Below are positions 27,171 through 54,554 of a stretch of 64,000 nucleotides of DNA, piece by piece (the stretch's first letter is position 1; each line of letters opens with the position of its first letter). The notes below the pieces were generated by a model. The model was not told the origin of the DNA, did not search any database, and saw only the letters and a program-made list of their open reading frames with translations. A program made the translations under genes and the position numbers. This stretch comes from Octopus sinensis (taxonomy: Eukaryota). Location: the NCBI RefSeq assembly GCF_006345805.1, contig NC_043007.1:20460001-20524000 (forward strand). Direction: 5' to 3'.

Positions 27171-27987
27171 CTAAAAAGAAAAATGATAAGAAAGAATTAT
27201 ATCAATTTACAAGATATGGTTCCAGGCTAGAAACGCAAACTGTAAGTGTGGACATATCATAGCCACATATACATTTCTTTACTACCCACAAGGGGCTAAA
27301 CATAGAGGGGGCAGGCAAAGGGATTAAATCGATTACATCGGCCCCAGTGTGAAACTGGTACTTTATTTATCGACCCCGAAAGGATGAAAGGCAAAGTCGA
27401 CCTCGGCGGAATTTGAACTCAGAACATAACGACAGACGAAATACCTATTTCTTTACTACCCACAAGGGGCTAAACACAGAGAGGACAGACAGATGGATTA
27501 TATCGACCCCAGTGCGTAATTGGTACTTATTTAATCGACCCTGAAAGGATGAAAGGCAAAGTCGACCTCGGCGGAATTTGAACTCAGAACATAGAGGCAG
27601 ACGAAATACCTATTTCTTTACTATCCACAAAAGGCTAAACACAGAGAGGACAAACAAGGACAGACAGACAGATTAAGTCGATTATATCGATCCCAGTGTG
27701 TAACTGGTACTTATTTAATCGACCCCGAAAGGATGAAAGGCAAAGTCGACCTCAGCGGAATTTGAACTCAGAACATAGCGACAGACGCTAAATTATTGAT
27801 CCCTATTTGAATGCTAATTGAAGGAATATTCTGCAAAAATATCTAAATATAAATATATCACAAACAAGGAAACTTTTGCAGAGTTTCTTTCACCAGTTAA
27901 AAGTATTATAATTTCTATTACCCAGACACATGGAAAAGAAGGTTTATAACTATCAAAGAATTTAGTAATATGAGATTATTCAATTAC

Positions 27988-36624: not shown

Positions 36625-36820
36625 CAGCATCAAAGACCGGATCATTCTCAAGACTTGTCACAGCAGTCACGACAGCATCTATTGCACTTCCATTTTGCTT
36701 TAGTTTCATAAATCCCAAATTAGCAGCAAGTTTTACTCCTTCTACACTTCTTTCAGACATATCATCAGGTATAGCCCAAGCTCCACCATGGATGGCTATA
36801 ATGGGCTTTATATCATTCAT
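36625..36820 (-). CDS. ASRGL1: Isoaspartyl peptidase/L-asparaginase, first coding exon (MNDIKPIIAIHGGAWAIPD...LENDPVFDA)
   Basis: Family-defining IAIHGGA and LE.DP.F.AG motifs; G|GTATGT donor. The six exons join in frame to 316 aa. Confidence 0.95.
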
Positions 36821-37512
36821 ATTTCAGCCGGTCTCTTCTTGTTTTCTATTTTGCCGGTTTCTTTATTAAAATATTTAAACATGTGTGCTTTAAAAACAAT
36901 ATGTATATATGTGTGTGTATATAAGTAAAGAAATATATTTTCTAAAGTGCATGAAAGGGCCATGGTGCAAGATTGTGTGCAAGTTGCACACAATCTTACA
37001 TAGATAATAAGCCCCAAATACTGGTGAAAAATTTAAGGAGCACTGAAACAAAGACTTCAAAAAACTCCTCTCAGCATGCACTAGTCATATATATGGTAGT
37101 ATTCTTTTCTACTCTAGACACAAAATTTCAAACTTTAGGGGTGGGGGGCAGTCAATTAGTTGACCCCAGTATGCAACTGGTACTTGATTTATTGACCCCT
37201 ACAAAAGGAGGAAAGGCAAAGTTGACCTTGGCAGAATTTGAACTCAAAACATAAAGACAAACGAAATACCGCAAAACATTTCACCCGGTGTGCTAATGTT
37301 TCTTTTTTCTTTACTACCCACAAGGGGCTAAACATAGAACGGACAAACAAGGACAGACAAAGGGATTAAGTTGATTTACATCGACCCCAGTGCGTAACTG
37401 GTACTTAATTTATACACACACACGACAGAGATAAAGAATATGCACACCACCCATTTTCAGTGTAACCCTAACCCTAAACTTAAACACCGGGTGTGCATAT
37501 TCTTTACCTTTT

Positions 37513-37561
<49 letters not shown>

Positions 37562-37961
37562 AATAATTTGAACAAATACGTATAATTCGATTAGTATGTT
37601 TAAATGTTGAGTAGAGCACCGGTATAGTTTAGACTACGCGAGTGCGCGCACCGGGACCACTGTTCTCAAGTAGTAAACCCCTTTCTACCTGTTTTACGTA
37701 AAAGGCTGGGGATGCAAAATTATACAAGGTAAAATAAAATTAAAAAAGCCCGAAATGATTAACGACCCAAAAACTTGCGATCAGAGGCCTTCTCGACTTG
37801 GTGCCAACGTGACCTTTCCGTCCTTTTTTAAATAAAGAAATAACAAAATATATTTACTTACCTGAGTACTTGATGATATTGAATAAAAATAGATTTCTAA
37901 ATATATATGATTATTTGTAAAAACGGACAGTTTTTCTTTTATATTTTAGATATATTTTAAA

Positions 37962-38201
37962 CTAGACGGGGATCTGTGCTGCTTTTGAATGAGTCGAAGG
38001 GTCGTCAAAACAGGTCGAACCAGTTTCTTCTTCGATTTTCTTCTGTATTTTAGCAGCCTTTTTAGCATAAAAGCTTTTCACTCTCTTCAGATAGCTTACA
38101 CGTAAAGTTTTTAATTTGTATCCGACTACAACACCCAAGACAAATGCAACTGAAGCCGCCACAACAATTTCCCTGCCCGTGGCGTGCATTTTGACGAGCA
38201 T
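37962..38201 (-). CDS. MTLN: Mitoregulin-like single-pass mitochondrial microprotein (79 aa from ATG 38201, or 75 aa from ATG 38189)
   Basis: REIVVAASVAFVLGVVVGYKLKTLRVSYLKRVKSFYAKKAAKIQKKIE aligns without gaps to human MTLN as recalled (RTLQLSVLVAFASGVLLGWQANRLRRRYLDWRKRRLQDKLAATQKKLD), 17/48 identical. One hydrophobic helix followed by a basic amphipathic helix. Confidence 0.75.
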   Translation of the reverse strand: MLVKMHATGREIVVAASVAFVLGVVVGYKLKTLRVSYLKRVKSFYAKKAAKIQKKIEEETGSTCFDDPSTHSKAAQIPV

Positions 38202-38376
38202 TTTAAAACTCAATCATGCTTGACTAGCGAGAAAACTATGGAATACTATATGCGTCATCTAAGCCTAATTTGTGTTAACTTGTTTTAGTTAAACTAGTAT
38301 ATCCAAATGTGTGTGCGCGAGCGAGCGAGCGCACATATATGTATGTCGAAGATACCTTAGGAATGAGATCCCAGGT

Positions 38377-38665
38377 GGATCTTTTCCTTTTGAACGGCAG
38401 TTTTCAACACAATTTCTAGTTAACTAAACACTTTTAAACTTCGTATACTGGTAGAATGTATCAAAATAAATGATTTTAGCTCAATAGAGGGCATAGGATT
38501 GGTTAAAATTCGAAAAATTAAACTACGTTAAACAAACGAATTACAATTTTCTCAAGAAAGCCAAGAGAAAAAAATGTTTTATTTTGACACATTCTACCAG
38601 TATACGAAGTTTAAAAGTGTTTAGTTAACTAGAAATTGTGTTGAAAACTGCCGTTCAAAAGATTC
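38377..38665. mobile_element. MITE with GGATCTTTT...GAACGGCAG TIRs and 8-bp TSD (Merlin-like)
   Basis: Long TIRs, TSD TCCCAGGT/ACCCAGGT. It interrupts the repeat seen intact at 63351-63480. A second copy lies at 54132-54554. Confidence 0.8.
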
Positions 38666-54131: not shown

Positions 54132-54554
54132 GGATCTTTTCGGTTTGAACGGCAGTTTTTTTTAAATAATTTCCACGTAACTAAACACTTTTAAACTTCG
54201 TATACTGGTAGAATGTGTTTATAAATCATCTTTTTCTCTTGGCTTTATTGAGAAAATTCTATAGTTTGTAAGATATTTGTTGTTGTTTTTTTTCTTCAAT
54301 TTCTGCAATTTCAACCAATCAATGACGTCTATTGAGGTAAAAAAACATTCTGTGCCGTATGAATATGTCCCTCGTTTAAGAAACAGATTGGGTTTATTTA
54401 CATTTGTGAAGAAAAAAAGATACCCTTCCCCCTAACTCTAACCCTAACCCTAAAACATATTGAAATGCAATAGATCGATACTAGTGTCATAATTATGGGT
54501 GACAATTTCATACGACACCGCTAGAAAAAACTGCCGTTCAAACCGAAAAGATCC
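54132..54554. mobile_element. MITE with GGATCTTTTCGGTTTGAACGGCAG TIRs
   Basis: Perfect terminal inverted repeats; flanks GGGCGAAA/AGACGAAA (6/8) suggest an 8-bp TSD. Confidence 0.8.

Follow-up and report, generated by a model that had tools for sequence, protein, structure and literature searches.

The 64,000-nucleotide (nt) stretch of Octopus sinensis DNA analysed here (RefSeq assembly GCF_006345805.1, contig NC_043007.1, positions 20,460,001 to 20,524,000; hereafter the window, whose own numbering is used throughout) carries on its minus strand an open reading frame (ORF) for a homologue of the microprotein mitoregulin (MTLN). The start codon of the isoaspartyl peptidase/L-asparaginase gene ASRGL1 lies about 1.1 kb downstream of this ORF, on the same strand. 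A preliminary description of the window, made from its letters alone, had proposed that one mRNA carries both, MTLN first and ASRGL1 second.

The MTLN ORF (37962..38189, minus strand) encodes 75 residues followed by a TAG stop codon (37964-37962), and was assigned from its Pfam match and its homologues. It matches Pfam family PF22002 (MTLN) with 30.0 bits, above the gathering threshold of 27 (E 4.7e-7), and its residues 10-57 align with positions 7-54 of the 56-position profile; the MTLN-like ORF of the preliminary description is thereby borne out, as are its coordinates. Two in-frame ATG codons, at 38201 and 38189, are candidate starts. Since only the ATG at 38189 is conserved in the closest relative (locus L012), in which the codon at 38201 reads ATA, translation most likely begins at 38189 and gives the 75-residue protein (MHATG...). 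The predicted protein opens with EIVVAASVAFVLGVVVGY, a hydrophobic N-terminal helix as read from the sequence, and continues with the Lys/Arg-rich segment KLKTLRVSYLKRVKSFYAKKAAKIQKK. It would thus have the layout of the family, a microprotein of about 50-80 residues in which an N-terminal hydrophobic helix precedes a basic helix. Residues F16, G19, G23, R30 and L34 are invariant in an alignment of 12 MTLN homologues. Neither of the exact octopus products (75 and 79 residues) is present in the protein collection searched; therefore, the microprotein appears to be unannotated.

A first search for MTLN homologues returned P0001 only. The phmmer and profile (hidden Markov model, HMM) searches found homologues of 50-100 residues in many invertebrate sources, all with a Pfam MTLN match and all sharing the hydrophobic helix followed by ...GYKLK.WR..YL.... 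Named examples are LOC144132230 of the tick Amblyomma americanum, hypothetical proteins of Rhipicephalus microplus and R. appendiculatus, and the product of a scorpion cDNA. Conservation of mitoregulin has been described for chordates or vertebrates (PMC6421467, PMC6091870), and a location in the mitochondrial membrane and an effect on respiration or lipid metabolism are known only for the mammalian protein (PMC6091870, PMC6421467).

The 100 nt or so immediately 5' of the MTLN start codon (38190..38290, minus strand) form a conserved block, 82% identical to L012, that may comprise a core promoter and a short 5' untranslated region (UTR); upstream of it the two sequences are not alignable (33%). 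About 200 nt upstream of the start codon lies a foldback element, whose 91-nt inverted arms (38387-38477 and 38571-38661) are 97% complementary and are separated by a 93-nt spacer; related pieces are found at 54132-54342. The sole match in an Rfam scan, a sub-threshold one resembling a miRNA precursor (29 bits, where the gathering score is 95), falls on this foldback. A scan for sigma-70 promoters and terminators, which is irrelevant to a eukaryote, gave results at the level of shuffled sequence.

On the other side of the ORF, the stop codon is followed by a trailer of 100 nt (37862..37961, minus strand), the end of a putative exon 1, which is free of ATG, AATAAA and ATTAAA. The trailer ends at a consensus 5' splice site, CAG/GTAAGT (37856..37864, minus strand), with the exon end at 37862 and the intron start at 37861. 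A donor exactly 100 nt past the stop, with no AATAAA in between, is what had been described. The sequence CAGGTAAGT occurs once on the two strands of the window, at 37862/37861, against an expectation of 0.62 per window, and the chance of finding such a donor within about 200 nt 3' of the MTLN stop on the correct strand is about 1e-3. By these counts, the donor that follows the MTLN stop is more than a chance occurrence. CAG/GTAAGT is intact in the octopod relative L012. In L014 (P0014), a more distant, cephalopod-like relative whose flanks are otherwise unalignable, TAG/GTAAGT stands 102 nt after the MTLN stop, and the donor is thus conserved in position. The closest relative (L012/L013; protein P0013, 66% MTLN protein identity) can be aligned with the octopus from about 100 nt 5' of the ATG at 38189 until some 190 nt after the donor. 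Identity to L012 is at the same level, 76-83%, in the exon, in the UTR and over the initial 100 nt of the intron. Because the similarity continues past the donor at exon level, this comparison cannot single out a splice site.

ASRGL1 is the next gene on the minus strand. Its coding exon 1 (36625..36820, minus strand) runs from the ATG at 36820 to the donor CTG/GTATGT (36625/36624) and by itself matches Pfam Asparaginase_2 (E 3.6e-13). Coding exons 2-6, also on the minus strand, lie at 35340-35198, 33237-33068, 30675-30554, 28098-27988 and 27170-26962 (TGA included); tblastn with ASRGL1 queries from human and tick served to place the exons. All introns of this six-exon model are GT-AG, and the spliced product of 316 residues is identical to XP_029642921.1 and XP_036363078.1 (isoaspartyl peptidase/L-asparaginase, Octopus sinensis). 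Both the start codon and the position of the gene are as given in the preliminary description. The protein belongs to Pfam family PF01112 and contains the motif with the threonine nucleophile (TVGAV, the self-cleavage site). Over its full length it is 42% identical to tick ASRGL1, and it is 50% identical to the human ASRGL1 probe, an approximate query. Among NCBIfam models it matches beta-aspartyl-peptidase best, with a score short of the equivalog cut-off. Identical ASRGL1 proteins are listed under two RefSeq accessions each in O. sinensis and O. bimaculoides (in the latter, XP_014778262.1 and XP_014778263.1); we interpreted each pair as variants of the transcript whose differences are confined to untranslated exons, an interpretation that fits, without proving, a spliced and variable 5' leader.

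The same two ORFs, conserved, non-overlapping and in the same upstream/downstream order on one strand, are found in ticks, and there their joining was observed in RNA. An RNA contig of Amblyomma americanum (L011; SRR12463347, 1062 nt) contains MTLN at 91-273 and an ASRGL1 ORF that extends from 387 to the end of the contig, uninterrupted over at least 225 residues. Only nt 1-328 of this contig align with the genomic sequence L010 (99.7%), which then reads ACG/GTGCGT, a donor 54 nt past the MTLN stop; the remainder is not within the next 10 kb of L010, and the Amblyomma intron is therefore longer than 10 kb. The Rhipicephalus RNA contigs L021 (SRR19411468) and L025 (SRR30597407) contain MTLN, a gap of 18 nt and a complete Asparaginase_2 ORF of 307 residues, and L022 (SRR19426769) has the same junction, the three contigs representing three sequencing runs. 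Eight Rhipicephalus contigs of genomic type match the RNA contigs through ...CCCCTGCAG and then continue with GTGAGC, which places the donor CAG/GTGAGC 16 nt after the MTLN stop. The distance from the acceptor to the ASRGL1 ATG is 2 nt in Rhipicephalus and 58 nt in Amblyomma. The tick RNA contigs begin 50-90 nt upstream of the MTLN ATG, where they are collinear with the genome, and the exon with the ASRGL1 ATG is internal. Ticks of two genera certainly splice the MTLN exon onto the ASRGL1 ATG exon and thus make a bicistronic RNA. An assembly chimera is unlikely, because four independent assemblies from two genera are each broken at a canonical donor.

The linkage of the two exons has independent evidence in GenBank KAH8028557.1 (P0039), a 141-residue 'hypothetical protein' of R. 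microplus in which MTLN residues 1-56 are fused to ASRGL1 exon 1. Taken literally, this entry would mean that an alternative donor near the end of the MTLN ORF creates a membrane-anchored ASRGL1, with the MTLN exon as an alternative N-terminal coding exon. The entry does read ...QQKLDG/MLPVVVVHGG..., in frame across the junction, and in Rhipicephalus a GAAG/GTGAAC inside the ORF (compare L021:79-330) would be in frame with the observed acceptor. However, the junction in each of the four tick RNA contigs starts from the donor behind the stop, never from the internal one, and the Amblyomma exon-2 leader contains stop codons. No comparable in-frame donor was noticed in the octopus ORF, though no systematic search was made. 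Gene predictors that force a single coding sequence yield such artefacts, and the fusion in KAH8028557.1 is probably one of them; an in-frame fusion as the explanation of the locus is considered very unlikely.

The tick RNAs bear equally on whether the octopus configuration could be accidental, the ORF and the GT site not being expressed features and the proximity of ASRGL1 meaningless. The ORF is indeed short and unannotated, and the ratio of nonsynonymous to synonymous substitution rates (dN/dS) against the nearest relative, L012, is only 0.58 over 58 codons, a value taken from a species pair that is too close. On the other hand, the Pfam match is above threshold, homologues across phyla share its layout of a transmembrane segment and a basic helix, no second copy of the perfect donor exists in the window, and tick RNAs join these two genes by splicing. 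From a total of 20,000-30,000 genes, the probability that an ASRGL1 orthologue would stand directly downstream of octopus MTLN by chance was estimated by us at about one in tens of thousands. Coincidence is accordingly the least credible account of the locus.

The 1041 nt between the donor and the ASRGL1 ATG would hold the putative intron (36862..37861, minus strand), the 3' end of which would be one of five AG candidates in the zone that combines candidate 3' splice sites with the ASRGL1 leader (36821..37043, minus strand; delimited by sequence and a crude pyrimidine count). The candidates end at 37043 (TTTGTTTCAG), 37021 (TTCACCAG; CACCAG), 36942 (TTTAG), 36888 (AAAG) and 36861 (AAAG). The last three had been named in the preliminary description and are present, but the two stronger ones, at 37043 and 37021, had been left out. 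A crude count of pyrimidines and of the base at -3 does not discriminate among the five. The five internal acceptors of ASRGL1 are all YAG with strong pyrimidine tracts, and the AAG acceptors at 36888 and 36861 look weak for this reason. The preliminary description had also called the interval mostly short interspersed element (SINE) and miniature inverted-repeat transposable element (MITE) sequence; repeats are present, namely a SINE-like element (37100-37413), an inverted repeat with 20-nt arms (37429-37509) and a (TA)n tract (37515-37558), but the recognisable ones cover less than half of the 1041 nt. Only two AATAAA motifs occur in the interval, one within the SINE at 37193 and the other at 36867-36862, which leaves 42 nt to the start codon of ASRGL1. 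The first poly(A) signal after the MTLN stop is thus about 770 nt away and within a SINE, which counts in favour of a bicistronic mRNA.

Three further features of this interval were recorded. An upstream ORF of 21 codons (36882-36817) starts at ATG 36882 and ends with a TGA that overlaps the ASRGL1 start (ATGA); the mRNA would include it only with an acceptor at 36888 or further upstream. At 150-180 nt upstream of the ASRGL1 ATG there is a near-perfect 35-nt palindrome (36966-37000; TGCAAGATTGTGTGCAA / TTGCACACAATCTTACA). With the acceptor at 37043 or 37021 it would fold into a leader hairpin; alternatively, it could serve as a protein-binding site of an ASRGL1 promoter. The SINE-like repeat, about 150-310 nt long and often present as two adjacent units, has more than 20 copies in the window (e.g. 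22010-21733, 15551-15271, 56382-55984, 47501-47297 and 27274-27787), several of them within ASRGL1 introns.

Spliced RNA in two tick genera, the same order and strand in the octopus and the conserved donor together support the proposal of one mRNA with MTLN followed by ASRGL1, and we consider it likely that the octopus pair is bicistronic as well. Its main competitor holds that these are two separate genes, with MTLN monocistronic and carrying an intron in its 3' UTR, ASRGL1 transcribed from its own promoter near the ATG, and their adjacency a relic of a former bicistronic state. The donor would then be joined to a short non-coding terminal exon within 37860-36870, polyadenylated at the AATAAA at 36867 or at 37193. 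Human MTLN is of this kind, its first exon holding the ORF and its RNA being spliced but monocistronic (PMC6091870), so that an MTLN ORF with a donor behind it does not imply a second cistron. The AATAAA at 36867-36862, which has TAG and AAG acceptors 20-75 nt upstream of it, could mark the end of a separate MTLN transcript, and the TATA-like runs at 36925-36895 might be part of a promoter for ASRGL1. In addition, NCBI lists MTLN of A. americanum as its own gene. In a relative, L001/L002 (P0001), the MTLN ORF seems to have no good donor, and an AATAAA follows about 190 nt after the stop. Against separate genes stand the tick donor, which occupies the same position and is demonstrably joined to ASRGL1; the retention of same-order adjacency between a mollusc and ticks, which is hard to explain without a shared transcript; and the AATAAA at 36867 itself, cleavage after which would leave ASRGL1 a leader of less than about 25 nt or would require overlapping transcription units. 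Two separate genes are therefore judged unlikely as the whole explanation, and transcripts of that form can exist as an additional isoform beside the bicistronic mRNA.

Several other observations weigh against a bicistronic mRNA in the octopus. The joining of the octopus donor to ASRGL1, the choice of acceptor and translation of the second ORF are inferred, whereas the tick junction was observed. Both acceptors close to the ATG (36888 and 36861) are of the weak AAG type, and the strong ones at 37043 and 37021 would bring several upstream ATGs and the palindrome into the leader. The similarity of L012 beyond the donor is compatible with an unspliced isoform. Comparison with other MTLN homologues gave a divided answer to the expectation that both the donor and the gene order are kept: the donor is retained in L012 and recurs in L014, but ASRGL1 was not found downstream of several loci. 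No convincing ASRGL1 exon lies within 10 kb downstream of MTLN in L008, L009 and L014, within 1.2-3 kb in L015, L016 and L027, or within 1.8 kb in L001/L002. The absence of ASRGL1 within 10 kb is uninformative, because the tick intron already exceeds that length. A metagenome scan with P0037 gave one locus, without ASRGL1. Conversely, the exon-sized fragments L003-L007, retrieved by a search with ASRGL1 exon 1, contain no MTLN in the approximately 280-1900 nt of upstream sequence that they cover.

Some of these loci have features of their own. In L003, the ASRGL1 exon 1 of which is 67% identical to that of the octopus, a strong acceptor, GTGTATTTTCAG (TTTTCAG, 838-853), stands 40 nt before the ATG, and the ATG exon is likely to be internal there too; the 850 nt upstream contain no MTLN. 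In L014, about 5.7 kb downstream of MTLN, a degenerate ORF resembling ASRGL1 exon 1 (L014:6507-6650; SPLPAVDGRVWSIPDNLS ... LEDNPIFN; tblastn E 0.002) has an internal stop, DGR in place of HGG and no similarity at the DNA level; it may be a decayed exon or a chance match. L008 and L016 are collinear (95%) and their MTLN proteins end in ...VVITA. Both contain a second, divergent MTLN-like ORF (L008:10687-10884 and L016:728-1021; HMM E ~5e-6) on the same strand about 440 nt downstream, which could be a tandem paralogue or part of a different, two-microprotein transcript.

In the proposed bicistronic mRNA of the octopus, exon 1 (about 38230-37862, minus strand) would contain the complete 75-residue MTLN ORF and end at the donor 100 nt past its stop. 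Splicing would remove an intron of about 0.8-1.0 kb and join this donor to the exon with the ASRGL1 start codon, and the mature mRNA would encode MTLN, a single-pass membrane microprotein, first and ASRGL1 second. The second ORF would most likely be reached by leaky scanning past the MTLN AUG or by reinitiation, and alternative starts or ends may give rise to monocistronic isoforms in addition. The MTLN AUG of the octopus has A at -3 and C at +4, and a single out-of-frame ATG (38068) lies between it and the donor. As far as can be read from the tick mRNAs, no out-of-frame ATG occurs between their two start codons, those present sharing the frame of MTLN or, in Amblyomma, that of ASRGL1. The ATG content in ticks and octopus fits leaky scanning; with a gap of 18 nt, as in Rhipicephalus, termination-reinitiation would be possible too. 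The earlier concern that a stop more than 55 nt before the exon junction would call for escape from nonsense-mediated decay is moot, as the MTLN stop of any bicistronic mRNA would be followed by another five junctions, those of ASRGL1. Since ticks have the arrangement too, it is old and probably predates the split between molluscs and arthropods.

Compared with the tick mRNAs, the octopus locus has the same families in the same order, with MTLN in exon 1 and a donor soon after its stop; in ticks, the next exon carries the ASRGL1 ATG. It differs in the distance of the donor from the stop (100 nt versus 16 and 54 nt) and in the length of the intron (about 1 kb versus more than 10 kb in Amblyomma). 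Human MTLN and ASRGL1 are on different chromosomes. Vertebrate MTLN (LINC00116 / 1500011K16Rik) likewise belongs to PF22002; the family products compared have 56-75 residues, with one transmembrane helix followed by a basic helix. The vertebrate ORF, too, lies entirely in the first exon before an intron (PMC6091870), but its RNA, unlike that proposed for the octopus, is monocistronic, about 440 nt long and with non-coding downstream exons. Octopus MTLN ends in a tail of 20 residues that is not conserved.

Bicistronic mRNAs in which a microprotein precedes the main ORF are known in human: MIURF-MIEF1, ASDURF-ASNSD1, PYURF-PIGY and the SLC35A4 upstream ORF (STREMI) (PMC13303939). As in the MIEF1 and ASNSD1 class, the octopus and tick loci have a conserved, independently functional small ORF upstream of a conserved main ORF, and leaky scanning or reinitiation would be needed; several of the upstream products in that class are mitochondrial microproteins. 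The gene pair is different, and MTLN occupies an exon of its own that is spliced in ticks, and putatively in the octopus, to the ATG exon of ASRGL1. Sloth1/Sloth2 of Drosophila (PMC9681215) are also encoded by an invertebrate bicistronic mRNA for mitochondrial small proteins, but they are two small paralogous peptides that act together, whereas the second cistron here is an unrelated enzyme of 316 residues. No paper in the literature searched names mitoregulin together with ASRGL1, and the three papers that pair ASRGL1 with 'bicistronic' are unrelated. The octopus pair is a probable addition to the known class of microprotein/main-ORF bicistronic mRNAs, with a different gene pair.

These comparisons carry the mitoregulin family beyond chordates and vertebrates to cephalopods, ticks, a scorpion and various other invertebrates, where its homologues are clear. 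The microprotein shares its mRNA with ASRGL1 certainly in ticks and probably in the octopus. Two annotation errors also come to light, the octopus microprotein being missing from protein sets and the two R. microplus ORFs being merged into a single 'hypothetical protein'. Few bicistronic mRNAs of animals are deeply conserved, and those that are make useful models of how ribosomes gain access to a second ORF. It is possible, and proposed here only tentatively, that MTLN and ASRGL1 already formed a two-cistron transcription unit in the ancestor of protostomes, and possibly in that of bilaterians, which chelicerates and cephalopods have retained for more than 500 million years, and that LINC00116/MTLN is the detached first exon of this unit. 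The arrangement would in that case offer an origin story for a gene misannotated as 'non-coding' and may explain its exon structure, and mitoregulin would have an unsuspected functional or regulatory coupling with isoaspartyl/asparagine metabolism.

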